Shown: positions 27,430 through 51,040 of the stretch, piece by piece
Position numbering within the stretch: the stretch's first letter is position 1
Layout: each line of letters begins with the position of its first letter
Assembly: GCF_964194025.1 (NCBI RefSeq)
Contig: NC_134475.1
Span: 16,430,001-16,494,000 of the forward strand
Source: Convolutriloba macropyga
Lineage: Eukaryota
DNA length: 64,000 nucleotides
Direction of reading: 5' to 3'
Position numbers and translations under genes: made by a program
The notes under the pieces: generated by a model
Databases searched by the model: none
What the model was told of the DNA's origin: nothing
Seen by the model: only the letters and a program-made list of their open reading frames with translations

Positions 27430-30400
27430 ATGTCCCTTTTAAAAAATAACTCTTCAAATAGTAATTCGTTCAACAACGACAAAGCAACATTGGAACATGG
27501 ACAAAGAGCAGAGGAAAATACCTCAAATTTTGTCTACAACCCGAATCACAAATTACCCATTTATACGCAAAGATCCCGATTGCCAATATACGCATCTAGA
27601 AGTGAGATTTTGTATCTGTTAGAGAAGTTCCAGGTCCTTGTGCTGGTGGGAGAGACGGGATCTGGGAAGTCCAGTCAAGTGCCACAGTACTTGCTTGAAG
27701 TTGGATGGGCACATAATCGGTGATGAGCATTAGAATCATTGCACATGTATTACTTTTGCAATTATACCTATAAAATGCTGATTCGTTCTTTTTTCAAAAA
27801 GTTTAATTGTTGATTAATTTGTTGATGAAGGTTTTGAAGCTTTTAACGCTCAAATGATAGTTTCAAGTTACATGGTTAAAATTAAGAGCTTCAACTGATA
27901 AATTGCTCTCGAACTAACTTTGACACATATATTGTAAACATGTTGGTCTTTTTATGCAGATTTTTGCTTGACCGTTTTTGCGCTTTTCTTCTAGAACCTT
28001 CTTTGACTTAGCAAGTGACTTTTTCATGCTGCACTTCTTCATTTTTAGTGATCTCAATTGGTCTCATCGTTTGCTGCCAATATAAAAGCGATTGTGAGTG
28101 GTTGAGGAACAAAGCCGTTGTAAGTTAGTGGTTAAGATGGCAGATCGATATCCGGAAGTCGGGGGTGCGAACCCCCACGAGGTCGGAGTTTTTGCGCCCA
28201 TAAAAAATTTCATAAGCTATACACCTAAATTAGATTGACCCGCCTGTTGTTCGAGAGCAATTTATCCGACATTATTGGCTTTTGTCTAAGTGTCAATTTA
28301 ATCCTGGAAACAGCTCTTACTGAATGATCACCTGAGTTGGCTTTTACCAGTAACCGTATCCAAGAAATCTAAATATTGTCAAAGATCTAAGCCAACTAAC
28401 CAAAAATTTACACTAAGGTTATCTGGTCACCGGACAATAGATTTAAAGGACAATATATCGAGAAAAATTGGGACAATAGATTGAAAATTAATCTGATCGC
28501 ATTGGCTGAAATTAAGCGTTGTTTGCGAGCTGGCATAAAATTGATACATCTGGCCTCGCGAGCCATAGCCATGCCTTAACGGCCGGTGGGACTTGATATG
28601 AATCTATCACAACCGAACAATATATCACGACTGAACTTTTAATGCCTTGTATATGTGAGCGCTTGAATCTGGCTGGCCGATACGCAACTTGAATAATTTG
28701 ATTTTCGATCTATTGTCCTAGTACCAGGTTATCTTGACCGTTATGAACACAAATTCTCATGATGAACATCACCTTTGTGTTAGAAAAATGATAGCAGTCA
28801 CTCAGCCTAGACGAGTTGCCGCTGTCTCTTTAGCAGCCAGAGTAGCCGAGGAACGCAACTGTATTTTGGGCGACGAAGTCGGATATTCGATTCGGTTTGA
28901 CGATTGCACATCACCCAGTACCAAGATTAAATTTCTTACTGACGGGCTATTGGTTCGCGAAATGATGGGTGACCCATTGCTTGAAAAGTATTCGGTCATA
29001 ATGCTTGACGAAGCGCATGAACGAAGTATAAATACAGACTTATTAGCTGCTTTGTTGAAAAAGATTTTGAAGAAGAGAAAAGATTTAAGGGTTATTATGT
29101 CCAGCGCGACTATCGACGCTCACAAAATGAAGGACTATTTTAATGTGAAGGAACGTGGCAACAATAACGATAATGCAGCCATTTTGCAAATTGAAGGTCG
29201 TTGTTATCCCGTCGACATAATGTACTCGAAACATCCGGTTGATGATTATGTAAAAGCTACTGTTGATACAGTTTTAATGATTCATAAGACCAACGCCCCT
29301 GGTGATATTCTTGCATTTCTAACGGGTCAAGACGAGGTTGAAGAATGCTGTCGTCTACTTACTGAAAAACTGAAGACGTTTTCGTCCAAAACTAAGTACA
29401 GAATCCAGTCGGTGCCTATGTATTCAAACTTGCCTGCCAGAGAACAATTAAAGGTTTTTCAGCGAGCACCCAGTGGGACTCGAAAAGTGATTTTCTCAAC
29501 AAATATTGCTGAAACCTCGATTACTATTGATAACATTATTCACATAATTGATTGTGGCTTTGTTAAAACTACAGTTTATGATCCAGATTTCAATACTGAA
29601 ACGTTGACAGTTTTACCCATCTCACAAGCATCGGCCAATCAGCGTTGCGGAAGGGCGGGAAGGGTCACGTCAGGAAAATGCTATCGACTTTACTCCGAAG
29701 AAGAATTTCTCAAACTGAAACCCCAATCTGTGCCCGAACTCCAAAGAAGTTCCATGGCTTTCCCAATTTTGCAGTTGAAAGCTTTGGGTGTCTCTAATGT
29801 TGCAAAGTTTGACTATTTATCCCCTCCCCCGGCCAAGAATTTTTCGCGAGCGCTGGAATTGCTTTACTCTTTAGGGGCAATTGACCCAAAAGTTGAATTG
29901 ATAAACCCTCTTGGTCATCAAATGGCAGAAATGCCTCTAAACCCGATGTTTGCTAAATGTCTGTTAAAAGCGAGTGAATTTGATTGCTCCGAAGAAATTC
30001 TAACATTATGTGCCTTGATGCAAATTAAAAATTTATTCCATGTTCCTTCAAGCGGAAAAGAGAAAATGAAAGCTGCCAGAGTTCAGAGAGAATTTTATGC
30101 AATGGAGGGTGATCATATGACGAATTTAAACGTATTCACCACTTTTGTCAACAACCGTCGGAGTAAATCGTGGTGTGACAAATATTACGCAAGCTACGCT
30201 TCACTTAACAGAGCATATAATATCAGAGAACAGTTGCTAAAGTATGTTCAGAGATTTGGAATCGAGATGTCATCGGCTAAAGGCTTCGACGATGACAAAG
30301 TTTTGAAGTGTTTATGTTCGGGGTTCTTTGCAAACGTGGCAATATACACTTCAAGAGGCTGTTTTAAAAGTTTGCGAGATCCAGTTAAATCGCCGGATTT

Positions 30401-30566
30401 ATTCATTCACCCTGATTCAGTATTGTATACTGTGCCCTTTAAAAGTGGAACTTATGTTCTCTTCACGGAAACTGTGCATTCTACAAAGATGTACCTGAGA
30501 GAATGTTCTGTTGTCAAATCCGATTGGCTTTTAGAAGTTGCTCCGCATTTTTATTCAGTAAGATGA
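27430..30566 (+). CDS. DHX35: DEAH-box RNA helicase DHX35 (exons 27430-27719, 28784-30566; ~690 aa)
   Basis: GETGSGKS, TQPRRVAA, DEAH, SAT, STNIAETS and QRCGRAGR motifs. The N-terminal FVYNP...QR.RLP segment is typical of DHX35. The GT-AG join gives HNRKMIAVTQPRR. Confidence 0.9.
27901..28283 (+). mobile_element. HINE family 1 subtype C carrying a tRNA-like module, in the DHX35 intron
   Basis: subTIRs aattgctctcgaac and gttcgagagcaatt. A-box/B-box-like segment at 28114-28185. Confidence 0.7.
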
Positions 30567-32799
30567 ACTGTAAAGTCCCTGGGTGAAGAGCAGTTGTGTT
30601 CGAGTAGTTACGAGCTGATTAGGTTCAGAGTCCTAACGGTTTGTATACTATTGCAAGTTTGCACAAGAATGCTTGTCTGATTACAATGGGAACGTTGATG
30701 AAATCTAAGTCGAGTAACTGAATCGACCAGATAGGTGCTTTGATTGAACCTAATTTTTTCATGATGAGTTTTGTGTAGTCAGTTATACATGCTTTTCGAC
30801 GTAGTGTTAGTTGAGTGACAGATGATCGGCCTCATTGAGTGAAACCATTAACCGCGATGAAGAACAGTAGTCTAATAAAAATTTAATTGCAATTTTTGCA
30901 TTCTCGGTTTTCGATCCATAGAGAGTCCAGAAAAACAATTTGACAATTAAACTTAAGAAAATTGCGCACTTTTTTAATCATATTTCAAAATATTGCTCTC
31001 TATTGTTGATTACAGAGAGCCAATTGCTGGCATGATGACGCTAGGTTTGAATTTACTCTCTGGATTTTGTGATTTTTAAGATACTTCTCAATTAGTTTCA
31101 ATAACCTTAACCTAACATTGCTTGAGCCCGCCCGTTAACTCCCTAATGCCAGCATCCCTAAGCACTAGCTGGCTACAACCGTAGCCAACCGCTCGCCTGT
31201 CATTTGCGAGCAATTAGTGGCTTAACGTTAGTCGGTTATGTTCTTTTTTAATTTAAATCTTAGCAATCCGTCAGACATAGTCGAGGGTAATTCGAAAGCC
31301 AATAGTCTGACTTTGGTTGATTTGATTTATATTTGAACGATGTCAGAATTTTGAACCCAGATTGCTGATGGTGAAAGGAGTGAAACCCTTGCGTAGAACT
31401 TTTGGGCTTCTTAGATGTCTGTCGCTATATATTTTTTTCATAATGTCACAAAATTATTTATGCTAACAAGGACATTTGCTATAATACAAACTTTATAATA
31501 CACAATTTTTGAAGAAGCACAGTCAATATGTTTATTTGGTGATGTATTTTTGGTTGCTGAATCTTGATTTACTTGTCTCTAAAAATTGAATCTGTTTTGT
31601 TTCAGATCCTCGAGCATAATGGTCTAAAAATGTTGATTCCCGGAACGCACACGATCGAAGAGTAATGTAACATATGGCTTTGGGCAGAAAATCTGTTTGA
31701 AAAAAGAGCTGTATAACCAAAAGATAGAAGGCATTTCCAACAATGCTGTTAAATGGTGACAATAGCGAACTACTTAGTAAGCGGACTGACATGGAGATAA
31801 ATTTAAATTTAATTTTTAACGAGACGTAAGAATATGACGTCATTTAAATAATATTAGCAGGTCGCAACAGGTGCTGAGTATATCCCAGCTTCCTGTCAGA
31901 AAGAATTCAATCTGTTTTTCCAGACACAGCTGACGTGACGTCTGATTATGGTAGACGCGCTTTTCATCGTCAATCAGATTCAAAAATATTTTTAAGCGTA
32001 GCTCTTATTATTACTCGATCTAAATCTTAAAAACTTCTTAAATCCTTAAATCGGTTTATGTTTGAACCAGTGCCTTGCACCATTTGGATTGTTGCTAGAT
32101 AGCATTTCACTAAGTAGAGAATCTAACATCTGCGTTCGTGACGTCAACGTTTTGTGTCCTTAAAGTTGTTGGATGATCTGAAACAATAGTTCTTTCTAAT
32201 TGCGCACAGGTGATTATAGTAACTTTTTAGCAATTATATTGTTATTTTTGATTTCACTTCTGTGAGATAATTTTCTGACTGATTGCTTTCGTTGTGCATT
32301 GCTTTCTTTCGAAAGCAACTTAGGAGATTACATTTGGCTTTGATGTCTTTGACGGCTTTCGTAGATATTCAGTTATTCCTAGATGGCACGGACTCGTCCT
32401 TAAGTTCATGTGACACAAGCTTTGACAATTTTATAATTTTCCGTTGAAGATTTTTAACTATTGACTAGTCTTTACAAAAATACGAAATACAGAAAGCAAT
32501 TTCAGTATGTTTGCCTTGAAGAACAGTTCATTTTCAGAGTTTATTTAATTGGCTTGGTACGAGATCAGATTGAGCGGAAGTTAATCCTTTGGCGCTACAA
32601 TTTAATTGCAATGTTTTTAGAACATAGAAAGTTCAGATGAGTACTTGGTCTAAAATTATAGCTAAATCTATTTTTCAGTTTAATTTTTTCTGGGCGATGA
32701 TGGCGAATTCTGACATTTAACTGCTCTCAAATAAAGTATAGAGCAGTTGTTTTAGTCCCAAGTTTTCAATTTTTTGTACCGATTTTTTCTAAACGATGT

Positions 32800-33630
32800 T
32801 TCTTGCGACCATGTTTTAGAGACAAAGCTATTGGTCAAAGCGGCCTGAACTACGGTGCTCCCATTTGGGCTTCCACAATTAGCAATGCAAACTGGAACTA
32901 TCTGCAAACGCAACAAATCATTGCTCTTCGTGCAATTACTGGCTGTTTAAAAATGTCTGACATCAATGACTTACACAATGAGGGTGAAATGCTTCCTGTC
33001 AAAGCTCACACTGAAATGTTAGCAGAGCAATTCCTAGCTGGCAGTTATCAGTGCCACTGTGCTGATCATGAAACAACCGCTTCAACCAGTCTTTGTCCCA
33101 TAAGACCGACACTAAATGATGCTTATAGGGACCGCGTGAATTAACACAAAAACAATAAAGAGAAATTAAATAGCAAAGAACACAAAAATGCGCTCAAAAG
33201 TATCCTCCGACTCACGGTCCATACTCAGCTGAACAAAGACAGCAAGCAACTAGGCACACCTCCCCAAGAGATAGCAGAACAAACGTTGCCATGATATGCA
33301 CGTATCCGACTAGCGCAATTGATGACTGGATACTGTCCCCTGCTAAACTCACTGCATTTTTAACTGCAGTAAGAATACAACGGACCTGAAAGTAATTGAC
33401 CTGTGGGAAAGACCAGTAGAGGTAGCCAAATGGCTGGACTTAATTCCATCAGTCCAACACGATCGCACTGCACAGAATAATCCGCCTTTCTTGCCCCATT
33501 CCCCTGATGTTAACGATGCCCCTCCTGGTCCCCTAACCCGGGGACCGCATATCATTCAGCACGGTGTTGATGCAGAAATTTAGCCGCACCACAAGCAAGT
33601 TGTGGATAGGCAGTCACTCACTACTACTAG
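32800..33630 (+). mobile_element. Non-LTR retrotransposon 3' fragment (I/Jockey-like RT C-terminus)
   Basis: NYGAPIW...LQTQQ..ALRAITG...LH.E..MLPV and RLAQLMTGYCPLLNS, followed by a cta-rich tail. Confidence 0.7.
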
Positions 33631-33785
33631 TATACCTATTATTATTATCTAGGATACCAGTTAAAACGGAAATAAGCGCCGGTACCCCGCCAAAATTACC
33701 CCCGAATTGCTGCTCTGTGAAGGCTGCAACAACAACCATATTTTAGGTAACTTGTTTCCACTGGACTTCTTGATTCTCGCACGAT

Positions 33786-34590: not shown

Positions 34591-36569
34591 TATTTATTGG
34601 TAACTATTAACTATTGCTTTTTTGAAACTTTCTTGGTTGTTCAGTTTTTTTTTAGAATTTTGGAAGTTAGAGATCTCATCCAAACAAGAGTCTGTGCTGC
34701 CGATTAACATCTTATATAGGTTTTACTGTTGTAAAAATGATGGTGGAAAAATCAGTTTTTCCGTTTTTTAATTGGTTGCGAATGAAAAGCAATTATTGTA
34801 GACGTGTATATTTTTTTTTCGAAGAGGAGAAATGGTTTTCTATCGGTCTTTTTTTGTTTTTTACAGGATGTAGATTTGTTCAAGCGGCATTTTGACCTAC
34901 AAACAAACTTGAGAAAAGCTGTCATGGTGGACAGATTTCTGCTGAGCAAGAAAAGTTTTTTGATCATGAGCTGCATTCAGTGAATGAATTTTTGACTTTA
35001 AAAATTGTTTTTGAGAGAGGCGATTATAAATAACCGTTTTTTTTGTCCATTTGGCTCAGTAGTTATTGTAATTTGGTTTTTGTAGAAATATTTTTTGCTC
35101 GATGCTGCATTATAGGTTACTTCCATAAAAGTTACTTCCATAAAGTTACTTCAATTAAAATTACTTCCATGAAGTTTTGCAGCGCCTAGTTATGCTTTTC
35201 AAGTCTAAAGTAAATTGGGCCATTTTTCTCTATTTTTTTTAAGTTAATTTCTGGAATTATTTCTTTTCTTCACTTTGGGATCTTTGAGAATCTACTTTGG
35301 GAATTATTTTCTTCACTTTGGGATCTTTGAGTGGTCTTTTATGAACAATCAGTGTATGTGGCAAAGTCCTTGTGACAATTCATGAATTGAATACCTGTTT
35401 TTTTGGGAAAAAAACGTGAGATTTTTTATAAATTTGTACATATACTAATCCGATTTTGGTGGTTTTCGTCCAATTTTGTTATTTTGTTTTTGACTATTTG
35501 TAGAAAAAATTTTGCTGTTCCCAGCCAGTGTTTTAATTTTATGTTATTGAAATTTGTTTTCTTATTGTAGTTAAATCTGTGAAGTTCATTAAAAATTTGT
35601 TCCTTTGTTAAAATTTTAACAACTGGACAATTTTTCTGCAGATTTTTTTTTTTCAAATTTTTGAATCTGAAATCATTTTTCACTTATTTTGTTTTCACAG
35701 AAGGATGACTATTTAACGTTTTTAAGCCGTGATTATTTTTATATGTGAGCGAGCAAAGAAACCGGAAGTTCAGGGAGTGAACAAAGTTTGAAAAATTTGT
35801 TTTGCCGATCAATTCGAAGAGCGGAGAAAAGATAATGGTTATTTTCTTTATACCTTCTTTTGAAATAGATCAAGAGTTGTAGGTGTGAAAAATTTTTTAA
35901 GCGAGCTATTTCAACGTGCTTCCTTTGAAGTTTTATTTTTAGTTTTAAGTTTTGTAGACTATCGGGTTATTGCAGACCAAAGTATTACTATTCAGCCTGT
36001 TTTAATAACTTTCTGATGTCTTGAAAACGGACATTTAAGGCTATTTTGATCGTTTTACAACGTTTTTGGTATTTTTTAGTCAATTTTTGGCCCATTTTTT
36101 TGTTTTATTCAATTTGTTGCCAAAAATTTTATGCCTGTAGGCATTGTTTTCTACAAAGGATACAAGTTTGTTTTTGTCACAAGTTGTCGTTTTCCATGAA
36201 ATTCGACAAAAATTGAAATTTGATACAAATTCTCATTTCGTTTCTCTGATTTCTTCAGTTTTCTCCGGACAAAAATGTTTGTGAGATCATTAAGGCTTGG
36301 GTTATATTTTGTGTTTAGATTACCAAATTTTATTGCTTGAGACATGTTTTGTCTGTCTGTGTGATTGTACTATGTGAAAAAGGAACTGAGTTTTCGTGAT
36401 TTTAGTTTAATTTGGCTATTTTTTTCACTCACTGACTATATGTTGTTATTTTCTCTGCTTTCATGCGTTTATTGAGAAGATATTAGATATTTTAAAGGCC
36501 AGTTCTGTCGGGGAATACGACTTCGAGTCGGTTTCGGAGTTTTTCCGGCTAATTTTGTTGTGCACATGT

Positions 36570-36920
36570 TCGCGTGACCATTTTGCGCTTTTCTAGAATC
36601 ATTTTTGACTACGCAAGTGAATTTTTCACACTTTTCTTATTGATATTTCAGTGGTTTCAATTGCTTTCACTCCGAGCTAAAATTTGTTTATCAAACAAAA
36701 CCGATTGTTAGAGAGTAGATAACAAGGCCCTGATAGCCGAGTTGTTAATACCTCCGCTGAGGTGACGGAATCGGACTCAGGAGGTCGGTTGTCGAATCCA
36801 AACTTCGGCTGATGTTTTTGCACCCATAAAGAAAAAAATATCAAGGCTACAGTGCCTAAATCAAATTGCGTCGCCTGTCATTCGAGAGCCATTTTTCCTA
36901 CGTTAGTCGGTGTATGTTTC
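36570..36920 (+). mobile_element. HINE family 1 subtype C (5' truncated), with tRNA-like module
   Basis: tagccgagttgttaa...gtcgaatcc, then tttttgcacccataaag and 3' tcgagagcc...cgttagtcgg. Confidence 0.65.
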
Positions 36921-38389
36921 TTCGTCGAAACTTTGCCTGCAGTTGTGTAGTTTTCAAGTCAATTTATATAAGTCTAATGCCAGTGTATAAATGCCATTTT
37001 ATGCAGCTATTATTGGGTGGTGGCGAATAATTCTTTCCTGTTGTCTGAAAATGAAGAACCAATTAAATTAGAAAAAGCTTTACGTACCAAAACCACCTGG
37101 AGCATTTCACATCAAAGGTGAACGCTTTTCACCTGGTTGACCAATATAGTTTTATGGGTGTGTCATTAATAGCTTTAAAGCTTTGTGCTTGTTCACTTTG
37201 ACTGCGTTTTCTCACTGCTTACATCGTCACGCCTAGTTGCTAGGTGAGACTTCATTTTCAAAGTACACAAATGAACAAAATTTTTGTTTCCATTAACTTC
37301 TGTAAACAAGTTAGCGCATGTTTTGCCCTGATAATGGTTTGTTCAAATGTTCTCCAACTGTTATGTGCACTCGCTGAGTTATATAAAATTGAATCAATGG
37401 CGAATACCTTGAAAATCTCTAGCTGACGGTTTATTGTGTTAGTGACTCGGATAAATATTTCTTCCTTCTGTATAGCTTAACAAGGTGAATACTAGTTAAC
37501 AGGGCGAAGCTCAACAACTGTTTCAACCAAGATGTTTGCTTTTAGAGAGGTAGACAAAGCGTCAACAGAGGGCAGAAGTTTAAAAAAGCTGGTATATTGT
37601 CATAAAACAGCTGCGGTTACCTTATGCAATTATTTCTCTTCCCGGTCTTTTTATGCAATTTTTTCTCTTCACAGTTTTTGCGCTTTCGTGTGAGAACATT
37701 GTTTGAATGCTTGTGACTTTTCCACAAGTTCTTCATTTTTGACTGGCCTAAGTTGCTCTCGTTCTGAAATAAAGTTCCTTGGTAAAAGCGATTGTGAACG
37801 AATGAAATCGAAAGCATTGTGGCTGATTGGTGTAGATGTCAGTTTGCCTACCTGGATGTCAGTGATTTGATCCCTTGTGGGGCCTTTTTTGTGCTCCTAA
37901 ATTTTTTCTCAACTACTCCCCTCAAATTTAAGTAAGGGAGGTTTTTAAAATTCTACTTCACTAGATAATCGAAAACTAGAAAATCCAAAAATTCGTAAAC
38001 GACTGAATCGGCCATTTTTGAGTTTTTGAATGATGTCACTTCAATTCTCGGCGCAGGCATAAAAATCGACCGCATGCGTCTTGGTAAAAAGTTCGCTTGG
38101 GATAAAATTCCGCCCCCGAAGTTGGGGTTGGAAAATGAGAGGTGGGGCTATATGACAGAAATCAAACTCGTAATACCGTCATAAGTTTTAGTTATAAGTG
38201 TCAAAATCTGCCTGGAAATGCCGGTCCTGGAGGGGGGGGGGTGTTCAAGCAGCTCGAATTGAAAACATATGAATGCACTCACTTATGGTAAAAATTAGAT
38301 TATGATGAATTATTAATGGCGATTGCAAGTGAAATTGTTATTTGTCTTCAGATACTTAATGAATATCTTCAGATGAGAACATTCTAAAC

Positions 38390-39581
38390 ATGCCTTCAGA
38401 TCTCCCGTTAAAGGTCAAAATTGGTCCCTCTATTCTGAATTCTGACCTGTCATGTTTAGCAGACGAATGCAACAGTCTAATTAAAAATGGCGCTGACTAT
38501 CTTCACTTGGATGTAATGGATGGCCATTTTGTACCCAATTTAACCTTTGGGGCTCCTGTAGTTAAGAGTTTGAGGAAACATGTTGAAAGGAGTGTGTTGT
38601 TTGATATGCACATGATGGTAGCTGAGCCTGAAAAATGGATCCAAGGGAACTTTTTCACACTAATTGTCGCTAGAACCGGCATACACCACATCATTATTAT
38701 GTAGTCGCATATCAACCTCTTGGCCGCATATTATAAAGAGACGAAATTGCTCATGGAATTTATTGAAATGAAAGCGTGTAGATTGGGATTGAACGCAGAA
38801 ATGGTATCGTTCGGCCGTCAAAGAAATTTTTCCCAAGAAACATGCGCAGGCTGATATCTCAAAGTGTTAATTGTGGACACTATTAAGAATTTGATGATGG
38901 AAAGCTGAACTTGTATTGGTGTAGAATCCGGTGATTTTTCTAATTAGAGTTACGTCTGAGAAATGTCCTTAACATTTTTTTAATTAAGTCAGCTATAAAC
39001 GAACAAACGCAAGCAAACTGCTATTGGCTAATAATTGATTATAAAATATAAGCGGAAATGCACGGTATGCAAATGTTAAATCTATATTTAAGAATTTGCG
39101 ATTTAATTTGAGCAATTCTTGCTGAAATGAAATGGTTCCCTAGCATATTAAAGATATGGCTAATGCCGGCGCCGATCAGTACGTGTTCCATTACGAAGCC
39201 TCCAAAGATCCGGCCAACTGTATCCGGCTAGTGAAGGAATCCGGTATGAAGGTTGGAATGGCTGTGAAACCCAAAACAGACGTTACTCTAGTTGACGAAT
39301 ACGCCGACATGGTCGATTTGGTACTGATTATGACAGTTGAACCCGGTTTTGGAGGTCAAAAGTTCATGGTTGACATGATGCCCAAAGTGGCGCATTTGAG
39401 GCAAAAGTTTCCTAAATTAGAAGTTGAAGTTGATGGAGGAGTTTCTCCAAAAAACGTTGACCAATGTTTTACAGCGGGTGCTAATCAAATTGTCTGTGGA
39501 AGTGCTATTACTCAGAACTCAGACCCAGCGGGTGTAATTAAACAACTGAAAACAATTGCAGATGATGCCTTTAAATTTTGA
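38390..39581 (+). CDS. RPE: Ribulose-phosphate 3-epimerase (exons 38390-38645, 39154-39581; 227 aa; GG-AG intron)
   Basis: [39 protein letters not shown] and EVDGGV motifs. The join gives EKWIQDMANAGA, colinear with animal RPEs. Confidence 0.93.
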
Positions 39582-40001
39582 CTGGGGCAGTGATTTGACA
39601 ATTTTTTTTTGGTATTCTTTTGGTATATATGGATTAACATTAAATGCCCGAGTTTAAACTGTTAAACTGTAGTAAAATGAGTTGTAATACAGAAAAACCA
39701 TTATAGCGTTTTCAAAACTATATCAGATTTTTTCATTTAATAGCGTGATGTTATCGTTTTGCTAGCTCTATTTTTAGGTGCGGGTTTGACGGGCAAGAAG
39801 GCTAAAAAGCACAACATACTCGTCATTATTGAGCATTACCCATAAATCGATTACCGGATTTCGATCTCAACAATGATTGTTATTACTGGAAGTGCCGTTG
39901 TTATCAGTGAATTGAAATGCTTTTATACGGAAGACAACTATGATAATGTGCGTGGTTCATCTGTTTCGATTTCAGTTAAGAAATGTGAAAACATTAACAC
40001 A

Positions 40002-43000
40002 ATGAATCTGCAACCGTCTTCATCCAGTGCATTTTCTGCATCTGAAGTGGTGTTGACGGAGGTCGAAGATCCATATCAGAACGAATCGACGTCATTCGAT
40101 GGTCCTCCACCTGCAAAAAGGCTCAGACTAGTGGGTTCGGGATCCACACATGTCTCGGCGGTCACTGACGCAAACCAGGCAGCTAGTGATCCTATTCTGG
40201 AAGAGCTGTTTGGTGAGAAATAATTGGAAATCCTGTGTATGAATTTTTAACAAGATGAGAGCGGGCTGTTGAGCAGTCTAGGAGAGTTGTCTTGGAATTG
40301 TCATTTTTTAGCTAATTGAAGCTAAATGAAAAATTGAATGATTTAGATGTTTAAGAATCTGGTTGCTATTCCGTCAAAATTAGAGGCAATTTTATGAGCT
40401 GGAGGTAAAATTATAAGTGCCAGTTGAATGCAGGTAAAAGTTAAAATAATTTAACGTTTCTCAAGATGAGCTTGCATCTCGTAAAGAAGGAATGGGTATA
40501 TAATAATAGTAATTGTGGTTCCTGCGTAATCGCAGTGGAACATCATTAGGCCTACAGTAGCCTGTTCAAAGCTACCTTTTTTCTCATTATTCCCCACATT
40601 TCAGACTGATCTTTTTATGAGCAGCATTGCTCTTTTTTTGTACCTATAGCCAAAAAAGAATAATGCTGCTCATAAAAAGAATAATGCTGCTCATAAAAAG
40701 AATAATGCTGCTCAATCTGAAATGTGGGGAATAATGAGAAAAAGGGCAGCTGAGAGCAGGTTACTGTAGGCCTAATGCTGTTCCGCTGCGATTTCGTAAT
40801 TTCAGTCGTTTTTCGGGGATATTTTTTGGTTATTTTTGCCACGTTTTAGTCAAAGGAATACTGTTTCATTTTGAACCTTATTTTAGGCACACTGAAAGTA
40901 TCTCACGCAGTGCCACAGGATCAATTGAGGAACCTCTCGTCCGAAGAACAAGTCAGAACTCTGCGTTCTACCATCACCCAGTTGCAATCGGAGAAACCCT
41001 TGGAAACTCGAATGGCAGCTGCCAACTATCTTTTGAACGTTGCAATCAACACCAACATTCCGAACAAGCTTATTTTCTCACTTTTTGAACTAGTACAGCA
41101 ATCAGAAATACCAGATGCATTGTTAAGCATTCTTCTCCGAATTCTATGGATTATCGCGAACGAGAGCTTGTTAGTAAAAAGCATGCTGGTCAAGATTTGC
41201 GTGAAGTTGCTAAGTTCCAATTTAAACAGAGTGGCTCGAATTGCTTGTCTTGAGATACTGGGTGACGTTGCCGATGTCGCGGCAGACAGTTCACAGATGT
41301 TGAAAATATTCGAAGAGTTTGCTCAAAGTCACGATTCTCGAATCAGGCGAGCTGTTGTTGAAATGATTTGTGGTTATGACTCGAGAGGTGGTAAAATATC
41401 GCTTGCTGTTTACCATAGATGCCTTGACTTGCTGAAAGACGAAAATGAAAAAGTTCGAATTGGTGCTATTAAAATCATGTCGAGTTATGCTAATAAATCG
41501 CCGAACGTCAAGATTACAATTGGTGATAAAGGCGATGATTATATGCGATTAGAAGAACATGCATTTTCTCAAATTTGCGAACTGGTCAATGATATTCAAG
41601 TTCCAGTTCGCGTTACGTCTGTCAGTATTCTGAGAAACTTCATAGGCGTCGATCAGAAATTTTTGCAGCAGACTTTAGGGAACTGTTTCCTTTCGCCTGA
41701 GGATTAAAATTTTGTTTTCACAAGTATGGAAAATGGGAGTTCATTTTCATGGGTTTTCCCTTGATGGTATTTTTCCTATCTGAAATGGGTGGTTATTTTC
41801 TTTGGAGCTCACACCGATTTCTTTCGAAATCGGTGTGAGCATATTGGTGCGCATATTTACCATCAAAAGATTTTGCAAAGCCTATGCTGTGGAGGTAGCT
41901 ATTGGTGCATTGTGAAGGGGAGAGTGAGTAAAGTTGTTGGCTCCTTGGCATCATTGCATCATGAAAAATAAATGGCCGTCATTATAGCATAATTGTTGCT
42001 ATTGACGGGTAACCCCCCTTAAACTATCGGGGCTAGTAGACTAAGTAGACTATAATACGAGGGAACCAAAATAGCAATTATAGATGATTAAATTCTACCA
42101 AGGGGAAAGGAAACAATTCCGCTTTTAGACAAGCAATTGATGTCACAGTTGCGAACGAAGCGTAGCTCCCATCAGAAGAACGCCGAGTTGGTTCGAAGTG
42201 GTGCTTACAGCTCAGGTAGACGGTGGGGAGACGATGCACCTCTTGATAATGTAGACGAACAGTCCTTGTCGCTTATAAGCTCGGGCGCTTGTGGAGCTTT
42301 AGTTCATGGTTTAGAGGACGAATTCAAAGAAGTCAGAATTGCTACTGTTGAAACTTTGAGCCACCTTTCGAGTAATCGAAGTACGTTTGCAAAAGAAGCT
42401 CTGGATTTTTTCATTGATATGTTAAACGATGAGATTGAATTGGTTAGAGTGAAAGCGTTGGAAAGCTTGGCGAACATTTCACACCATGCCGTGTTGAGAA
42501 AAGACCAGGTTGTGGATACTTTGAGTTGTTTGGACGATTATTCGGATATTGTGAGAGAGAAAGTGCATTATTTATTGAGGAAAATTCAATTTGAAGAGAT
42601 GGGTTGCCTGAAGTTGACGTTGCAGCGTCTGATGAGGAATTTGAAGAAGTACCCGCTCGATAAAACTTCCATTTATGGTGCTCTGAAGTACCTGGGTTCT
42701 AAGCATTCAAATTTTGTCATTCCTTATAGTAAGTGCGATGGTATTTCCTTTTTTTAGTGAATCATTTAAAAAGGAAAGTGAGCCTTTACCTTATAATATG
42801 AACATCTAGAATTGATCTTTCTGCTGCTAAATTTGATTTATAATGGCCGGGCATACCTCTTATTAAGCGACATTGAGCGATATCACTGATATCACTTAAA
42901 ACGTGCGTAGATATAACCAGGTTTGTGTTGCAATTAAGTTCGTTTCGTAAGCCCTTATAACAAATCAATTGTTTTAGATCATTTTTGCATTTGTTTATGC

Positions 43001-46000
43001 TGAATTTGTTTAACCTGAAATATTACGCTATGCGAGTCTGCAGCTGGCGGATATACGACAAATAAGACTAGCTAAATGTACTCTTGATTGTGAATGTTTC
43101 AGTGAAAGAGCTGTTATGTGCACATCCTTTTTTGGACACTACTGAACCCAATGTCTCAGATCCCTTCTACATCGCAATTATGATCCTAGTTCTCAATGCT
43201 GCCCACTCAACCAGCAGCATCATTGGACTATTCCCCCCATTCATAAACCAACATCACCAGTTTCTCAAGGAATTGCACCCAGAGTTTATACCTGATCTGG
43301 ATCTGAATAAAAACTCATTGAGGTTCTGTTACCGGAGACCAGAAAGTGCAATCAAGTTTCAAGATGTAAATGTGATTGCTCGAAAACAGTACGAATCGGT
43401 GGTGGAAAAACTGAAAGCGTCTGGTGGTAAAATAACAATAAGCTTGCTGAAAAATTTATTGCGTGACCTAGAACATTTGAAAAATTGTGACAAAACATCT
43501 GGACCGGCCAATTTTCTCTGTGCATCTTTGAAAATAACAATAGCTATGACAAAAGTTTTCGAGAAATTAAAATCGTTAACACCGACAAGCCAACTTACAT
43601 TGTCTGATGAGTCAGTTTTTTCTGATCTGAAACGATGTGTTAGTTTCAGTTTTTACTTGGAGGGCATTTTTAATGGTTTGTCCACTGAAACTGTTTCAAA
43701 CATTCTCGAAAATCGATGCATTGCGTCTACCCTTATAGTATTGTTTACGCTATTGAAAGAATCTAATGACATGGCTGGTGGTGAAAAGGCTTTACTGTGC
43801 AAGAATTTTGCTGAGAATGTTCGGAGTTTCAGATTGCGTATTACATCTTCAAGATTACTGCAAGGTCAATTTAGCACTGATCTTCTAAAGCCATTATTGG
43901 AGATTGATCCTTCAAAGTTGACGTTAATTTGTAAGTTTCTGCATCCATTGTTACTGGAAAGTGCTCAAGTGGCCGTTAGAACTATGGTACTTACATCAAA
44001 TGAGTTTGCAACAGGAGTGTCAATGGCGAAGGCAGTTATTAACCATCCACAGAGCTCAGACAGAGTTGAGTCTTTTATGGCTGGTCTGCTGTTGGCTTTG
44101 CGATTAGGTAAATATGAAAACGATAGATATATACGATGATGGTAGTAGCATTTATGTGGTTCTTGATTATTCAGAATTTAAGCCGCCAGCTTCATTTGCG
44201 TGTTTACTAGTGGAATTCAATTCAAACGTGAACCAAATTTGGTGCCAGTTTTTTTATTAATAGCCGCCCTCATCTTCTCAGCCGGCTATTATAGCGCTCC
44301 TATTACGACTCGAAGAGGAGTATTGGAGAAGTCCTTTTTTTTAATCAATTTTATTGGAGTGATTTTTGAAGCGGGAAATGAAACGCATGAAAAAATTTGG
44401 AGTGATTTTTGTGCTGAACAAAAGTGAAGAGCGGAGCGAAAGGAGAGTGGTTTTTGTTCATACCGCTGTTTTTGAGAGAGCGAGAAATTGATGTGTGAAA
44501 AAATTTTCTCTAAGCGAGAGAAATTTTTTTGTTCACGTGCGGCATTTTAAAGCAGTTTTTTTTCATTTCTTTTGGTTAAGAGGTTTGGTTATGATTTTGT
44601 TTTAATTTTAGGCTGGTTTTGGTAGTGTTTTGAAGGTTTTTGGAAACTCATGTGAATTTTATGATAATTCGGAGGTTTTTAATGTATTTTACTGATTTTC
44701 GGGCTAATTTTTGCGTTTTTTGACGATTATTTTGTTTTACTGGCTCAAATGGGTATTGAAGAAACCCCTTCTACTTGAGCAATTTTATGATAACAATTGG
44801 TTATAGTTTTGTGCGTAAGAATCATTTTTTTGTTGAGAAATATGACAAAAAAATTCTGAAAATTGGAACTATTTTTCTTATTTTTTTTTGCAGTTTTTCG
44901 TTTTCTTTCTGTTTTTAGCTAAGTATCTTTGCCTATTATGACTTGCCTATTGTTTTGCGAGCATCTGGATACCCTTATGGCTGAAGGGAGTTTCTCTTTG
45001 GATTTATATGTATTTGAAATATTAAAAAAATTAGTGACTTTTTCCACTTTTTCAGTGGAAGTTGTTTTTTTTTCATAATTTTAGCCTAAAGTATTTTTCA
45101 TAATTCACATAAGTGATTTTTGTAAGTACTAGTTGTTTTGATGAAGTTATTTTGGCAGAGATAGTTTTTTCGGGATCTCAATTTATAACAAAATTTGATC
45201 AGATTTTTTATCATATTTTAACAAATTTGATTTTATTGTTTTTACTTTTTTGTTTGATGACTTTGTTTCAAGATAATCATAAATTAGTGAAGGCACGTTT
45301 TGTGTGATGTGTAGGTGTATGGCGTTTAAATGGATTTTCACTTCGAGTCGTTTCCGGAATTCTTCCGGCTATGTTTTTTTTTACTTCGTCGAATAAAAAA
45401 ATGTTTCGCTTTACCTCATTTTGCCGCTTTTTCAACTTTTTGCGTGATATCTTTTTGACTTCTCTAGGCTAGTTTCTCTCTTCTCTCATTCTGCTAAAAT
45501 TGATTTTGAACATCAGTTGCTCAGCAAAGCAATTCAAAATGAACAGAGTCAGTATAAAAAATTGAAGTCAGAAGTAGAAACGGGATAAACCCATAAAGCC
45601 CAATTTTAGATGCCCGCTATTTGAACGTCGTTCCTGTAAGTCTTAGTTACCATCTCTAATGCTTATTGGTATTGATAGTAGCCCCTGTAGCCTCTCTCTG
45701 AGAAACAGAAGTACGTTATGTTCAACTACGAAATGCCATCAAATTAAATCGGACTTAAAAAATGTTTTTGTACAAAAATCTTTTTTTTTTAATATCTTCT
45801 ATTCTTCCAATCCCAATCATGCTTATTGGAATCAACGGCGGCTATTTTCCGGCAATCTGTCGGGTATGTTTTTAAATCGTGGTAGTGGTCAATGCAAAGC
45901 TCGAATGGTTGAAGTAAGGTTCAGTTTACCCCGTCTGTTGGTCTAGAACAATTCGACCGACCTTAATCGGTTATTAATAGCCGCACAGCGATAGCTGGCG

Positions 46001-49000
46001 CTATTATGGGCCTTATCTTGTTTATTTTACAATTCAAAGAATTTGAATTGTATTGGGGAGGTGCCTTTTTTAAGATCTGTTCACACATTTTCATTATTTT
46101 TGAATTCAAATTGAAGCGATGATTTTGGTCACGACGAAACAGGAAGTGAAGCGACAAAGCGAGTGGTTTTGCGGCGTGAAGTTTTTGCATTATAATTTTT
46201 AAATCGAGTGAGAAAAGGTTCATGAACAAAACTTCGCTTTCTCGCTAGTGGTTTTCTGTTCACATGCGGCATTTTGTTTATTATTAATTCCTCTCGAACG
46301 AAGTTCGTAGCAATTATTGTAAAGCTGTTAGTCCTTTTTAAGCAAATTCTTCGCTTGACCGTTTTGCGCTTTTCTAGATTATTCTGTGACTTATCAAGTA
46401 ACTTTGTTCATTTATGAGTGATATCTGTTGCTCTCACTCCGAAGTAAAGCTTGTTGTTAAAATGAAATCGATTGCAGCAGAGCTAAACTAAGGCCGAGTG
46501 AGCCCTGCTTCTGCTCAGGGATCGGTAGGCGTGGTCGAATCCCGGCGTGGCAATGTTTTTTTGCTCCCATAAAGAAAATTTTATCTAGGCTACGCCCCTG
46601 AATTAAATTGCCTCGCCTGTTTGAGAGCAGTTCTTCAGACATTAGTCGGTTTATGTTTTTTAAAATATTTTTCGATATTTTTCAAATAGTTTTCACAATC
46701 CAGTCATGATCCATTCTAGGTCTAGTTTTTTGTTTGAACCAAATTTTATTTTCCCGCTAATGGTTTTATGTTCATGTGCAGCCTTTTTTGTTTGGTTTTT
46801 TTCCAATTTTATTGATGAGATTTTTTTTAATGACTTTTCCAATCCCGTCATAATCCATTATAAATCTAGTTTCTTTATTCAGTCAATGAAAATTCTTTGA
46901 ATTGTTGGTCAGGACTTCGTCCTGCTATGTTTTTTCCGTCATGATTTTTGTTACGACCATATGACGTCACAGCCACTTCAAATATGCTTTTTTAAAATAT
47001 TGCAGATCTACGAAGCTATTGCGGCTGTTTTCTGGCAATCTGGCAGCTAGGTTATTTTCCTGTTCAGAAATTTGCTCGTGGGGATGCATATGTTCAACAT
47101 TTTCCCCCAATTTTTGCTCATTGTTGACAGTAGTGTTGTTGTGCTTACAGAGGGTTGCTGAGTAGAAGATAGAAGAGGGTTACTGACTTGTCTGATCAGA
47201 CTTATTTGGCTAAGATTTTAGAGTATTCAGATTTTTTGTAGAAAGTTTTTTCTAATTTTGCCGGAACAATCTGCGTCAGATCGAATGAGGGCTATTAGTA
47301 CTTCCAAAGATATTGTGGATTTGAATTTTTGCCTGTTTTTAGCTTGTTTTTGTTGTTGCTCTGACTTGTATTTCAAGAATTGTCTCGTTTTAATTTTAAG
47401 ACGTTTTAAAGAGGTTTCAATTTTGTTAACAGCCTTTTGATCTCACTGATTTTAATTTCCCCCTATTTTTGGCGGAGTTTTAGCGAAAGTGTTGTTGGCT
47501 GTACCTCTTTGAAGACAGAAGAGGGTTGCTGAATTGTTTTGATCGGACTTATTCGGCTAAATTTTTTGACGATTTAGCATAGCAAATATCAAACATCAAA
47601 GACATAGATATGTGCAAGATTCTTATAGCGGGTTTACTTGTTTATTAGCCTTAACTTCATAAATTGAAATTTGCTATTTGTCAATTATCCTTTTATTCCT
47701 TTTCGTAATTTTGTCTCATTTTTTGCTGGTGAAATTGATGTACGCTTTTTTGAGGACGTCTAGAGTGATTTAAATGAACTCATAATTGAATGTGCTTACT
47801 TTAAAACCACTAATTTTCGAAAAAAAATGTTCTCATTTTTTCATAGTCCTAACTATTTCTCCGGTTCATTTTTAGTTGTATATGCCTCGATGCTTTGTGA
47901 CATTTAAAATCTTTTATTCAGTGTAAAGAACTCTCCTGATTTTCATCGAATCCAGTGTATTGAAATTTGATTCGGAATGTTTGTTCATTGTTTCGGAATA
48001 TTTGTTTTATGTTCAATGTTTGTCTTGACAGTCTTTTTATAGCTGCGAAGCTGTAAGCTGAGCGTAGCTATATTGCGGTGCTCTTGGTTTTTTTTTTGTT
48101 TCGTCGTCTGATGCTTCATTTTCGTTTTACATTTGTTCTAGAACATTCTGTCTCGTCACTGCTTAAATGGCTTTTTCGCGCTTGATTTCACGCTTTCTGC
48201 GTGACCTAAATGGCGGTTATTCAGAAACAGAATCTGTTCCTAAAACAAATTTGATTTTAAGAAAACAGATTGTATGGTCTGACAGCCGAGTGGTTAAGGC
48301 GACTGGCTGTTAATCCGGAGATCGCCGGTTCGAGGCGCGACAGGGAAACTTTTTTTGCACCCAAAAACAACCTCCTTTGAAATAAACTTGTAAGTTTTAT
48401 AGGCGGCGGCGATAGCTATTATCAACTCACTTCTGTATCTTTTTCCATCTGTATTTTACGGCACGCAAGTCTATTTCGCAGCTATTCCGGCAATCTGCCG
48501 GCTATGTTTTCAACTTTTGGAAGTCAATGAGAAGCGAATGGCAGATGTCAGTGCGCAGCTAATACTTTTTGAGTGGTTATCTTCCTTAAAGCACAAGTAA
48601 TTTTTCAATTTATACCTGTTTGTTTTCCTTTTGTCTTTTTACTAAGTCTCAATAATGGCTGATTTGATTGACTTTCTAATGAGGCATGAGTCGGTTTATT
48701 CAATGTTTCTATTTGGTAGCGTTTGGTTTTTATGACTTTGTCATTCTGTATTCTCTTGAATTACGGGTTAATTTTGTAGTTCGTATTTATGGGCTGTTCT
48801 GTTGTGTAATCGCTTAGTTTAGAAAACGACGGGCCCTATATGCTTCCCAATGGATGGAAAAGAAAACAAACTTTCATTTTTGCAGTTCATAGTTTTTCTT
48901 TTTATCACTGTTTACAAAATTCTGTTTGATTTTTATTTTTTGTGCACATATTTGTTGTTCTACTTGCTTCTGTATCCCTTTACGTGAATTGAGCTGGGTC

Positions 49001-51040
49001 ACATTGACTCTCAATCTTTTGAACGATTTCCTATAATAGCTAATGGTTGTAGCGACATTGGACCATACTGCCTGCTATAAATGTCACTGGCTTTTAGTTT
49101 TTGGTTGTTCTGTTGTGCTGTCACTTGGTCACATTGGCTATTTTTTGAGCATAGTTGAAACTTTTGAGCTGTTCAACGGTTTTGTCCCATTTCTAATAAT
49201 TTGGAAAATTTTTCAACTTTTCGAAAAAAATTGTTTCGAATTTTGATAGTTTTTCTAGTTTTCTTTTGTTGCCGTTCTTGTTTTCTTTTGTTTTCGCATT
49301 CATGACTTTTTGCGTGTCGACTTTTCGATGCGGATAGATTGAATCTATTCGATTTGTAAAGGCGGTAGTCTGAACGCCCATGGAGCTTCTTTTTGTAAAT
49401 ACGGACTAAGTCATCAATAGTTTTTAAAACTAAATGGGAAAAAGACCTTTTCTATATTCTTTGTTTTATCTTTATCTTTTTGTGTTGTAGTGTATGCTTT
49501 TTTGGCCATCGATGGCTGTTCTTCTAATTAAGTTGAAAGCGCGGCCTTCAGTTTGTCAAATTTTTTGGGTGTGTTTTGCAGGATTTTTTGGTATTTTTTA
49601 ATTCGTCGTCTTCGATTATTGTTGCGACCCTCAAATCACGCTGCAACAAGTAAACATGACTTTTGTTGACTTTTTCCGTTCAGCCGCTGATTTCTTGTTC
49701 TGACAAAATCAGGTGATTCCTTAATAAGAATTGTTTTTTAATGAGAACTTCTTTAGAGTTGCGTTCGATCGAGACCAAACTTTTCGATCCCTTCAATATT
49801 TATCTTTTGCGGTGAAATACAAAAACCAACTTGACTGGTATTATCAGCACTGGTATACATGTCCGTCGTTGTTTCAGATGCCATCGAGTTTTAAATTACA
49901 GAGCATTAATTATGTAATTTTAAATATTGCTATCTGCTCGTTAGTAATTTGAAATATTTTTGTCTGCATTTGGTTTGGTACACTATTATGCCAAAAGGTA
50001 GGATGATTGAAGTAGGAACATTGTGCAAACGCACAATAGCGAGCCTCCTTGTCCGAATGGAAACATTAAGAGAAATGGAAGGGATTTTTACGGGACGACT
50101 TACTTTGGTCATGACTCCGCCATGCAATTGATCAGAACGTTCGTTTGTTTACCGATGAAACGTGAAAATGGTGCAAATCGTTCTTTTTAAATTTTTTGAA
50201 GCTCCGGAAGTTGCATTCAAGTTTTTAGTAACGAATTATGTATCTAATCGTTGAGGCCACGCAGCCAGCTGTCTGTTTAAACGAGTGATAGCTTAAAAAA
50301 CGTTATTGTATGGTATTTTCATTCCTGTGGTACACTGTTGCTGCCAGCCTAAGAAATAGAAGTCACGAAAGAAAGAGCCACAACTGTCTTGCTTGTTATG
50401 ATCTCGTTCTACAACTTTTTAGCAATATTGTTCTCTTTTGTTTAAGGAGTTTTTTTTAAACAAGTTCATTTTTCATCATTTAATTGTGTTTTTTTTACAG
50501 CTTCGCAAATTTTGTAGTAATTCTGTCGGCTACTTGCGGCGAGAAATCATTATGTGCTTTCGTAAATAAATCCATTCAATAATGTGAGTCGAAACTTTAA
50601 ATGTTTTAGTGAATTGAATTCCATAGATGTTGCTTTAGCTGGTAATTTTGAACGTTGTTGCTTCAGACGTGACGTTAAATAACATTGATGACATCAACAG
50701 AGTTCGAATTGTCTTGACTTATCCCGGTGGAACGGACCAAGTCGTTTCTCCGAGTGCCGACAAGTTCCGAGAAGCTAATGATACTGAAGATGACGAACCC
50801 TCATCGCCAATCAAATCACGGAAGGTTCCAGATCCAAAAGCTCCGAAGACTTTGAAACTGAGCACGACTTGTTTTATTTCTCACTCCTCATGGACGGAGC
50901 CAGCTGATCTGTTGATTGGTGTTTATTTAGCTGTGCCTAACTTGTTTGACTACACCATGTCTGTGACAAGTTCTGAAAAATTGGTATCGATTAGCGAAAG
51001 TGTTAAAATTGTTATTCATCCCAAACCCACAGCGATATAA
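40002..51040 (+). CDS. INTS4: Integrator complex subunit 4 (exons 40002[or 39873]-40212, 40887-41678, 42129-42728, 43103-44107, 50667-51040; ~993 aa)
   Basis: HEAT repeats. Signature segments FLQQTLDKQLMS, SSGRRWGDDAP, SGACGALVHGLEDEF.EVR, HPFLDT.EP...DP.YIA and C-terminal SHSSWTEP...HPKP. All joins are in frame. Confidence 0.92.
40525..40796. mobile_element. Fold-back/MITE-like palindrome in INTS4 intron 1
   Basis: ~85-bp inverted arms (cgcagtggaacatcattaggcctacagta...cattattccccacatttcaga and its reverse complement). The inner arms contain a 21-bp unit tandemly repeated x3. Confidence 0.8.
44254..45872 (+). mobile_element. HINE family 2 element in INTS4 intron 4
   Basis: 5' ttattaatagccgc; 3' gcggctatt + hairpin ccggca-atc-tgtcgg + tatgttt. 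Its internal parts resemble 35700-36550. Confidence 0.55.
45971..47055 (+). mobile_element. HINE family 2 element containing a nested family 1C element (46285-46660)
   Basis: Same family 2 termini. The nested copy has aattcctctcgaac...gagagcagtt + cagacattagtcgg and a tRNA-like remnant. Confidence 0.55.
48276..48350 (+). pseudogene. tRNA-like (Asn-GTT-like) module of a family 1C remnant
   Basis: agccgagtggttaaggc (A box), ctgttaa loop, ggttcga (B box). The acceptor stem does not pair. Confidence 0.55.

Follow-up and report, generated by a model that had tools for sequence, protein, structure and literature searches.

Two coding introns of the acoel Convolutriloba macropyga start with GG rather than GT and have ends that pair with each other. 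Both lie in a 64,000-nucleotide (nt) stretch of the forward strand (contig NC_134475.1, positions 16,430,001 to 16,494,000; hereafter the window, whose own numbering is used below), one in the gene for ribulose-phosphate 3-epimerase (RPE) and the other in the gene for Integrator subunit 4 (INTS4). We think it probable, with considerable reserve, that these GG introns, and probably also an intron of the DHX35 gene, are young insertions resembling miniature inverted-repeat transposable elements (MITEs), which a tolerant major spliceosome cuts out along their own edges. For the two GG introns, sequence comparison establishes the boundaries, the absence from relatives, the above-chance pairing, and the purifying selection on the flanking exons. 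Their origin from transposons is suggested by their anatomy, their lineage-specific presence, and precedent. Spliceosomal removal at a non-GT site is inferred, and the stem may help splicing.

GG-AG Introns in RPE and INTS4

Three conserved genes lie on the + strand of the window amid retroelement debris: DHX35 (27430-30566), encoding a DEAH helicase of the DHX35 type, RPE (38390-39581), and INTS4 (39873-51040). Their six introns were placed by reading the exons against intron-less orthologues, which confirmed all six positions given in an earlier, sequence-only reading of the window. With the proposed boundaries each coding sequence has one stop codon, at its end. Orthologous loci were fetched via protein hits from four related assemblies, called species B, C, D, and F, with the window's species as species A. 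Junctions in the relatives were located by enumerating all donor/acceptor pairs against the window proteins, and splice-site rules were not assumed. The GG introns, their paired arms, and the flanking exons are as follows (a slash marks an exon/intron border; arm positions count from the first intron base, +1, or back from the intron end):

38390..38645, + strand, RPE exon 1
38646..39153, + strand, RPE intron, GG-AG, AAG/GGAACT..TTAAAG/, 508 nt; in species A only
38646..38668, + strand, RPE 5' arm, +1..+23; the helix reaches exon bases -2 and -1
39111..39140, + strand, RPE 3' arm, -43..-14, then a 13-nt tail TAGCATATTAAAG
39154..39581, + strand, RPE exon 2
40887..41678, + strand, INTS4 exon 2
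41679..42128, + strand, INTS4 intron 2, GG-AG, TAG/GGAACT..TTTTAG/, 450 nt; in species A only
41679..41706, + strand, INTS4 intron 2 5' arm, +1..+28
42090..42121, + strand, INTS4 intron 2 3' arm, -39..-8, then a 7-nt tail CTTTTAG
42129..42728, + strand, INTS4 exon 3

The RPE gene of species B and C is one open reading frame (ORF), reading ..EKW(V/I)(Q/N)DM(A/S).. at this site (..PEKWVQDMANAG.. and ..PEQWINDMSDAG..). Excision of 38646-39153 from the window yields ..EKWIQ/DMANAG.., an indel-free match to these uninterrupted ORFs, and the empty site of species B (tccaag^atatgg) is exactly the window's two exon edges. The boundary can slide by 3 nt owing to a repeated AAG. The stretch across the junction (HMMV..PE.W...M..AGA) contains no indel in 12 animal RPEs, from sponge to fish. 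Similarly, INTS4 of species B and C is one ORF at the site of intron 2 (..QQTLDKQLM.. / ..EQTLDKQLM..), and excision of 41679-42128 gives ..QQTL/DKQLM.., again an indel-free match; here the boundary can slide by 4 nt owing to a repeated TTAG. In the protein collection searched, no transcript-derived protein of species A was found to span the junctions, the best RPE match being exon 2 alone.

Pairing of the Intron Ends

Pairing was measured with RNAduplex between the first 30 nt and the last 50 nt of each intron and expressed as a z score relative to 1000 dinucleotide shuffles. In the RPE intron the ends form a duplex of -14.9 kcal/mol (z=-2.2, p=0.037) and those of INTS4 intron 2 one of -30.7 kcal/mol (z=-5.8, p=0.001). 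In whole-intron partition functions the first 12 nt were placed on the last 60 nt with a mean probability of 0.82 in RPE and 0.91 in INTS4 intron 2. Moreover, in both cases the terminal stem closes the entire intron in the minimum free energy (MFE) and centroid folds, and INTS4 intron 2 is over-structured as a whole (MFE z=-4.2). The end pairing seen in both GG introns is real. They share 11-nt ends, GGAACTnTTTC...GAAAnnGTTCC, and have unrelated interiors, as would fit a single inverted-repeat family of which both are members, each with its own cargo. Within INTS4 intron 2 there is, in addition, a perfect 15-bp hairpin (41806-41839).

The registers reported by the sequence-only reading (+1 opposite -9, -15, and -12, and weakly opposite -11) were reproduced exactly by RNAduplex. 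Likewise, the GTAAGT and GTAAAT introns (INTS4 introns 3 and 4), in which it had seen no end pairing, have no end duplex and z>0, and in the GTAAGT intron the partition-function value was 0.00. The weak trace noted for the GTGAGA donor (INTS4 intron 1) exists as a -9.1 kcal/mol duplex ending at -10; however, it is no more than composition would give (z=+0.5), even though the whole-intron fold pairs these ends at P=0.83. The clear pairing claimed for both GGAACT introns and for the GTGATG intron of DHX35 was upheld for the former and is borderline for the latter, as described below.

Donor Type across Twenty Introns

The proposed association of end pairing with donor weakness was evaluated, by duplex energy against shuffles and by rank correlation with donor strength, over 20 homology-anchored introns from the three genes in five assemblies, of which four have non-GT donors (GG, GG, GA, and GC) and 16 have GT donors. 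All four non-GT introns were paired beyond their shuffles (each p<0.04), the GA and GC introns of species C having z scores of -2.7 and -3.5. Only 1/16 GT introns, one in species D with a GTGAGC donor, paired at that level, and the two classes differ at p=0.0004 (Mann-Whitney) and p=0.001 (Fisher). A graded relation between pairing and donor strength was not established either over all introns (Spearman p=0.08) or within the GT introns (p=0.11). The association of pairing with donors holds for their class, non-GT versus GT, and was not shown to be graded by weakness.

The stems start at +1 in three of the four non-GT introns and at +3 in the fourth, are 13-28 nt long, and are followed by tails of 6, 7, 13, and 20 nt from the right arm to the AG. 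In the GA intron of species C INTS4 (gag/GAACAG..GACAG/), the arm ACAGTCATGTCCAA is complementary at 12/14 positions to TTGGCCATGACTGA. The GC intron of the same gene (aag/GCAGTGCATTGAT..ATCAATGCATTGCTTGTAG/) has a 13-nt inverted repeat from +1, with a duplex of -21.2 kcal/mol. The sites of both are uninterrupted in species A and B. In fact, all four non-GT introns are lineage-specific, the ORF of relatives being continuous where they lie. For the three GT introns that are lineage-specific, the z scores are -1.2, -0.35, and +0.84. The non-GT donors all conform to AG/GNA (aag/GGA, tag/GGA, gag/GAA, and aag/GCA, the last being the GC donor), and an exonic AG precedes the donor in 4/4 non-GT introns versus 4/16 GT introns (p=0.014).

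The DHX35 Intron

In species C and D, DHX35 is read as one uninterrupted ORF. The intron of the window is absent in species B, C, and D, and the sole DHX35 intron of species B sits 44 nt upstream of the species A site. The features are:

27430..27719, + strand, DHX35 exon 1, placed by its ORF and by alignment to its intron-less orthologues in species C and D
27720..28783, + strand, DHX35 intron, GTGATG..TTAG; in species A only
27720..27748, + strand, DHX35 5' arm, +1..+29 (RNAduplex)
28741..28773, + strand, DHX35 3' arm, -43..-11, then a 10-nt tail TTTGTGTTAG
28784..30566, + strand, DHX35 exon 2

The junction reads GWAHNR/KMIAVTQ, as in the uninterrupted orthologues P0128 and P0129. The end duplex has an energy of -15.1 kcal/mol (z=-1.2, p=0.13), and the partition function places the first 12 nt on the last 60 nt with a mean probability of 0.51. 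A perfect 7-bp helix anchored at the donor, GGTGATG/CATCACC, was found at p=0.008 against random 50-mers. The end pairing of this intron above chance is borderline.

The DHX35 intron contains nested repeats. One, at 27898-28275, resembles a short interspersed nuclear element (SINE) with a tRNA-like head (..GGTTAAGATGGCAG..GGGGGTGCGAACCCCC..), and recurs in the window as five or more diverged copies (46283-46411, 36555-36905, 37644-37760, 58530-58607, and 63531-63609). ARAGORN called no tRNA gene on the SINE-like copies. The second, at 28415-28735, is a MITE-like element of ~320 nt bounded by 33-nt inverted repeats (73% complementary).

Haplotypes, Selection, and Read Depth

Both GG introns are present in the window haplotype and in a second haplotype of the locus, L001. 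Between the two, the exons diverge by 0.4-3.7%, save for the poorly conserved INTS4 exon 1 (6.9%); divergence is 14-20% in the interior of the RPE intron, 12% in intergenic DNA, and 19% in INTS4 intron 1. When the frame is carried through the GG junctions, synonymous to non-synonymous changes are 9:1 in INTS4 exon 2, 8:1 in exon 3, 14:5 in exon 4, and 13:4 in RPE. Read one base off frame, INTS4 exons 2-4 give 4 synonymous versus 35 non-synonymous codons. Because changes in the junction frame are mostly synonymous, both genes are under purifying selection on both sides of their GG introns.

The ends of the RPE intron differ at 0/23 and 1/59 positions between the haplotypes. End conservation was considered as a sign of constraint and rejected, since the 5' ends of the canonical introns are invariant over equal lengths, with first differences at +39, +57, and +75. 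INTS4 intron 2 diverges by 2.0% from its counterpart (L001 8475-8924), against 8-19% for other non-coding DNA of the locus and ~5%, by our estimate, for flanking synonymous sites. This low divergence could reflect constraint acting across the intron or a coalescence that was local and recent. No covariation was seen, as neither GG stem changes between the window and L001; the species C haplotypes are 99.5% identical and show no informative stem change.

In four read runs, depth is even across exons and introns and no splice joint occurs, so that they behave as DNA. Among the DNA contigs, none joins 38645 to 39154 or 41678 to 42129, and no intron-less allele was found. Depth is halved over 38669-39124 in three runs; an intron-less allele was rejected as the cause, since the L001 interior falls below the 95% likeness cut. 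The 31-mer depth of the GG introns equals that of their flanks, as for single-copy DNA.

Proposed Removal of Young Insertions at Their Own Edges

The explanation that we favor can be set out as a series of steps. A short, MITE-like DNA with terminal inverted repeats would have inserted into a continuous coding exon after the split from species B. The major spliceosome of the lineage would accept AG/G-N-A donors and thereby rescue the pre-mRNA, with the 5' cut coinciding exactly with the insertion's left edge (G+1). The 3' cut would be made at an AG past the right repeat, at a distance of 7-13 nt in the window introns and 6-20 nt across the non-GT set. Removal at these edges would restore the ancestral reading frame. 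The pairing of the 5' and 3' ends would be the inverted repeat itself, which in RNA would close the intron as a stem-loop and juxtapose the splice sites. Such a stem-loop may aid splicing and need not be required for it.

The sequence-only reading had offered relic inverted repeats of intron-generating transposons as one explanation, and this idea has gained support from the uninterrupted sites in relatives, the arms running from +1, and the shared 11-nt motif. Since the paired arms begin at the first intron base, they are like terminal inverted repeats. At INTS4 intron 2, moreover, the 8 nt past the right repeat (GCTTTTAG) match the 8 exon bases on the left (GACTTTAG) at 6/8 positions and are likewise similar to the empty site in species C (GACGCTAG). 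This would fit an 8-bp target duplication in which the intronic copy supplies the acceptor. Assignment to a transposon superfamily was attempted and rejected: the TTA/GGGAACTGTTT end is Tourist/Harbinger-like and the 8-bp duplication hAT-like, and neither is borne out by the other introns. A U12-type identity was also rejected, as the donors GGAACT, GGAACT, GAACAG, and GCAGTG are not /RTATCCTT, and no such donor or branch site (TCCTTAAC) was found in the intron ends.

Several observations weigh against this explanation. The read runs behave as DNA and the borders rest on protein homology. Weak in-frame GT-AG alternatives exist in RPE (38666-39143, ATT/GTCGCT, adding 10 residues) and in INTS4 (41685-42128, ACT/GTTTCC, changing D to GNY); for the GA intron of species C an alternative changes RKDQ to RNNQ, and for its GC intron one adds 1 residue. 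No second copy of any of these elements was found in the ~250 kb made up of the window and the loci, whether by BLAST of the introns or by a search for inverted-repeat pairs with up to 2 mismatches. Together with the single-copy 31-mer depth, this means that a repeat family is not demonstrated. A repeat resembling a target-site duplication is convincing at INTS4 intron 2 alone, the others sharing AAG or AG, and the tails past the right arm are unequal. Finally, the sample is three genes, in which donor type is confounded with intron age.

Alternative Explanations

Structure-assisted splicing, the other explanation offered by the sequence-only reading, is possible in a stronger form, if rather improbable: the terminal stem might be needed to define or juxtapose the splice sites at non-GT donors and be maintained by selection, which is compatible with a transposon origin. 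Pairing in all four non-GT introns agrees with this, as does the fact that among the three lineage-specific GT introns only GTGATG, the weakest-looking donor, pairs. In a post hoc comparison, GTG donors had lower duplex z scores than other GT donors (p=0.009, 5 versus 11 introns). Further, the last INTS4 intron of species D (L009 11109-11563), which has a GTGAGC donor at an old shared position, is paired (z=-2.6): it has a 10-bp perfect inverted repeat, TTTTTGAATA/TATTCAAAAA, and the donor itself pairs as well; its GTAAGT/GTAAAT orthologues are without pairing. The invariant ends of the RPE intron beside its divergent interior, and the over-structured, slowly diverging INTS4 intron 2, point the same way. 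However, the haplotype pairs offer no stem changes and no compensatory change, and the 5' ends of canonical introns are equally invariant, so that end conservation is not specific to pairing. A stem over +1..+6 would mask the donor from U1 and U6 and would have to open, and the 3' arm overlies the usual branch-site zone, where U2 would act. Donor type is also confounded with age, and the 3' arm may end as few as 6 or as many as 20 nt before the AG.

In its boldest form, which we regard as doubtful, this idea would make the terminal hairpin the working definition of splice sites in acoels, the base at +1 marking the 5' cut and the hairpin delivering the 3' AG. The major spliceosome could then remove insertions with any G-N donor, and a hairpin-ended transposon landing after an exonic AG would be an instant intron. 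Rapid intron gain would follow in a bilaterian lineage that has lost most of its old introns.

Misread donors are an unlikely explanation. The introns would then be ordinary GT-AG introns using a weak internal GT, with small changes to the protein and part of the stem in the exon. In all four non-GT introns, in-frame and stop-free GT-AG pairs do lie 3-20 nt from the proposed donors. Their use, however, would insert 10 residues into the RPE stretch that is free of indels in 12 animals, and for RPE the internal GT appears unlikely on sequence grounds. In INTS4 the D of QTLDK would be lost, breaking a conservation that extends from sponges to vertebrates. Counted by eye, the alternatives match the U1 consensus at 2-3/9 positions, against 4-6/9 for AG/GNA, and the AG/GNA found at all four insertion edges would be left unexplained. 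In addition, GA and GG donors in an identical context have been proven by RNA in another animal (PMC5714493).

Chance complementarity of AT-rich intron ends under a search is very improbable: the window does contain 149 inverted pairs of at least 16 nt within 2.5 kb, the DHX35 duplex is at p=0.13, and the GTGAGA intron folds at P=0.83 with an unremarkable duplex, but INTS4 intron 2 reaches z=-5.8, non-GT and GT introns are sharply divided (4/4 versus 1/16), the stems are anchored at +1, and the pattern recurs at independent sites in a second species. Just as improbable is that the insertions are not removed from RNA, either disabling dying gene copies or being excised from somatic DNA; they resemble transposons and the four read runs behave as DNA, yet both haplotypes keep them, the flanking exons are under purifying selection in the frame of exact removal, no further RPE copy was found by homology search in the sole database assembly of species A, and DNA contigs of two samples cross the introns at flank depth with none skipping them.

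Intron Turnover and Other Features

The number of introns changes very rapidly among these close relatives. DHX35 has none in species C and D and one each in species A and B, at different sites; RPE has none in species B and C and one in species A; and INTS4 has at least three in species B, four in species A, and at least six in species C. Shared introns span 63 nt to 6.6 kb. Two lineage-specific GT introns, one in species B (L002/L007, 2727-3838 of the merged contig) and one in species C (L004 10445-11643), have perfect direct repeats over their borders (AGGTG and TCAGGT). These are textbook gains by insertion with duplication of an AG/GT target, and intron turnover by insertion is rife at this locus. 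The intron of species B contains a repeat present elsewhere in the species B genome. The remaining INTS4 features are:

39873..40212, + strand, INTS4 exon 1
40213..40886, + strand, INTS4 intron 1, GTGAGA..AG; position common to species B and C
42729..43102, + strand, INTS4 intron 3, GTAAGT..CAG; position common to species A, B, C, D, and F; no end pairing
43103..44107, + strand, INTS4 exon 4
44108..50666, + strand, INTS4 intron 4, GTAAAT..CAG, 6.6 kb, shared position, repeat-filled; no end pairing
50667..51040, + strand, INTS4 exon 5

INTS4 intron 1 contains a foldback repeat (40525-40796) with 85-nt arms that are 88% complementary and with inner hairpins of 29-31 nt. Its 31-mer depth runs from thousands to tens of thousands against 6-70 in the flanks, marking a very high-copy MITE-like element, and species B carries a piece 75% identical to it. 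From 44252 onward, INTS4 intron 4 holds a repeat with a summed contig depth of 60,000-400,000 in the DNA runs, among the commonest of the genome. Many contigs start or stop at 44252-44257, and the 6.6-kb intron is largely made of such repeats.

The window is AT-rich (~36% GC), which, like the small number of introns in its genes, agrees with the published Symsagittifera genome. At 453-3507 it carries an element like a long interspersed nuclear element (LINE), with two tandem, partly duplicated sets of reverse-transcriptase ORFs that are near-identical in pairs (1127-1831 with 2605-3192, and 1850-2152 with 3211-3507). The spliced leader of Symsagittifera was looked for in the window and not found; a tRNA gene search found none, and the matches to Rfam were confined to generic hairpins scoring under the threshold.

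Comparison with Known Systems

The combination of non-canonical donors and end-paired introns, which the sequence-only reading believed to be undescribed, is in fact known in Fritillaria, Amoebophrya, and euglenids (PMC11282704, PMC7789003). A full-text search of the acoel literature found no paper on such introns, and they are not mentioned in the acoel genome papers PMC9911081 and PMC6451197. The Symsagittifera genome paper leaves splice sites untreated beyond trans-splicing, and the Praesagittifera paper found no intron composed solely of a transposon. Gene models that allow only GT or GC donors would break or frameshift genes such as RPE and INTS4 of the window. Acoels are now tractable for asking whether end pairing is a mere mark of the transposon or an aid to the spliceosome, a question that becomes testable.

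The closest likeness in donor context is to the copepod Eurytemora affinis, whose GA- and GG-donor introns are supported by RNA-seq, unique to the lineage, recently gained, preceded by an obligate exonic AG, and accompanied by a normal U1 (Robertson 2017, PMC5714493). As in Eurytemora, G+1 is kept with A or G at +2, an exonic AG precedes the donor, A is at +3, and the acceptor is AG; the introns are lineage-restricted and recent, stand beside many new GT introns, and must be removed for a full-length protein. Neither end pairing nor inverted repeats were reported for the copepod, and its introns have RNA-seq support, whereas the borders here are placed by homology. Such introns make up ~10-12% of introns in Eurytemora (PMC5714493) and 2/6 in the window.

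In the larvacean Fritillaria borealis (Henriet et al., 2019, via PMC11282704; bioRxiv 10.1101/2025.08.15.670264), non-canonical introns are species-specific in position and carry terminal inverted repeats, like those found here, together with target-site duplications, which have a convincing counterpart here at INTS4 intron 2 alone. They derive from MITEs and are removed by an adapted major spliceosome, and GT-AG introns occupy conserved positions, as in the window. In contrast, ~95% of the larvacean's introns are non-canonical, for the most part with AG-AC or AG-AT borders, whereas the acoel introns retain G+1 and the 3' AG, and the majority of those seen are GT-AG.

The introner-type non-canonical introns of the dinoflagellate Amoebophrya also have ends paired by inverted repeats (8-20 nt), a predicted stem-loop, and strain-specific presence, and they carry direct repeats of 3-5 nt over the exon/intron borders (Farhat et al., 2021, PMC7789003). 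This organism differs in being a protist with no clear terminal dinucleotides, no U1 snRNA found, and repeated intron families (PMC7789003); in the acoel the borders are regular (G..AG) and no second copy was found in the ~250 kb. In euglenids, non-canonical borders, structure joining the intron ends, repeats like target-site duplications, and new positions are found (PMC3935182, PMC11170887, PMC11282704). However, euglenids have a short stem in an unvarying register (+4..+6 with -8..-6), and the borders are variable, without G..AG and with no polypyrimidine tract. Here the stems are 13-28 nt long from +1 or +3, and G+1 and the terminal AG are kept in 4/4 introns. A euglenid-type identity was rejected on these grounds, as the G..AG is kept and the stems end 6-20 nt before the AG.

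Algal introners resemble the proposed insertions in being inverted-repeat DNA transposons that insert in exons (Huff et al., 2016; Gozashti et al., 2022, 2025, PMC12130899). In Micromonas and Aureococcus the element supplies one splice site and the duplicated target the other, and splicing removes the element together with one duplicate (PMC12130899). Those introns are canonical GT/GC-AG and exist in hundreds to thousands of near-identical copies (PMC12130899), unlike the GG and GA donors and single-copy depth seen here. Should RNA confirm the GG-AG, GA-AG, and GC-AG junctions, acoels would be added to the lineages that turn transposons into non-canonical introns, namely larvaceans, one copepod, and a few protists.

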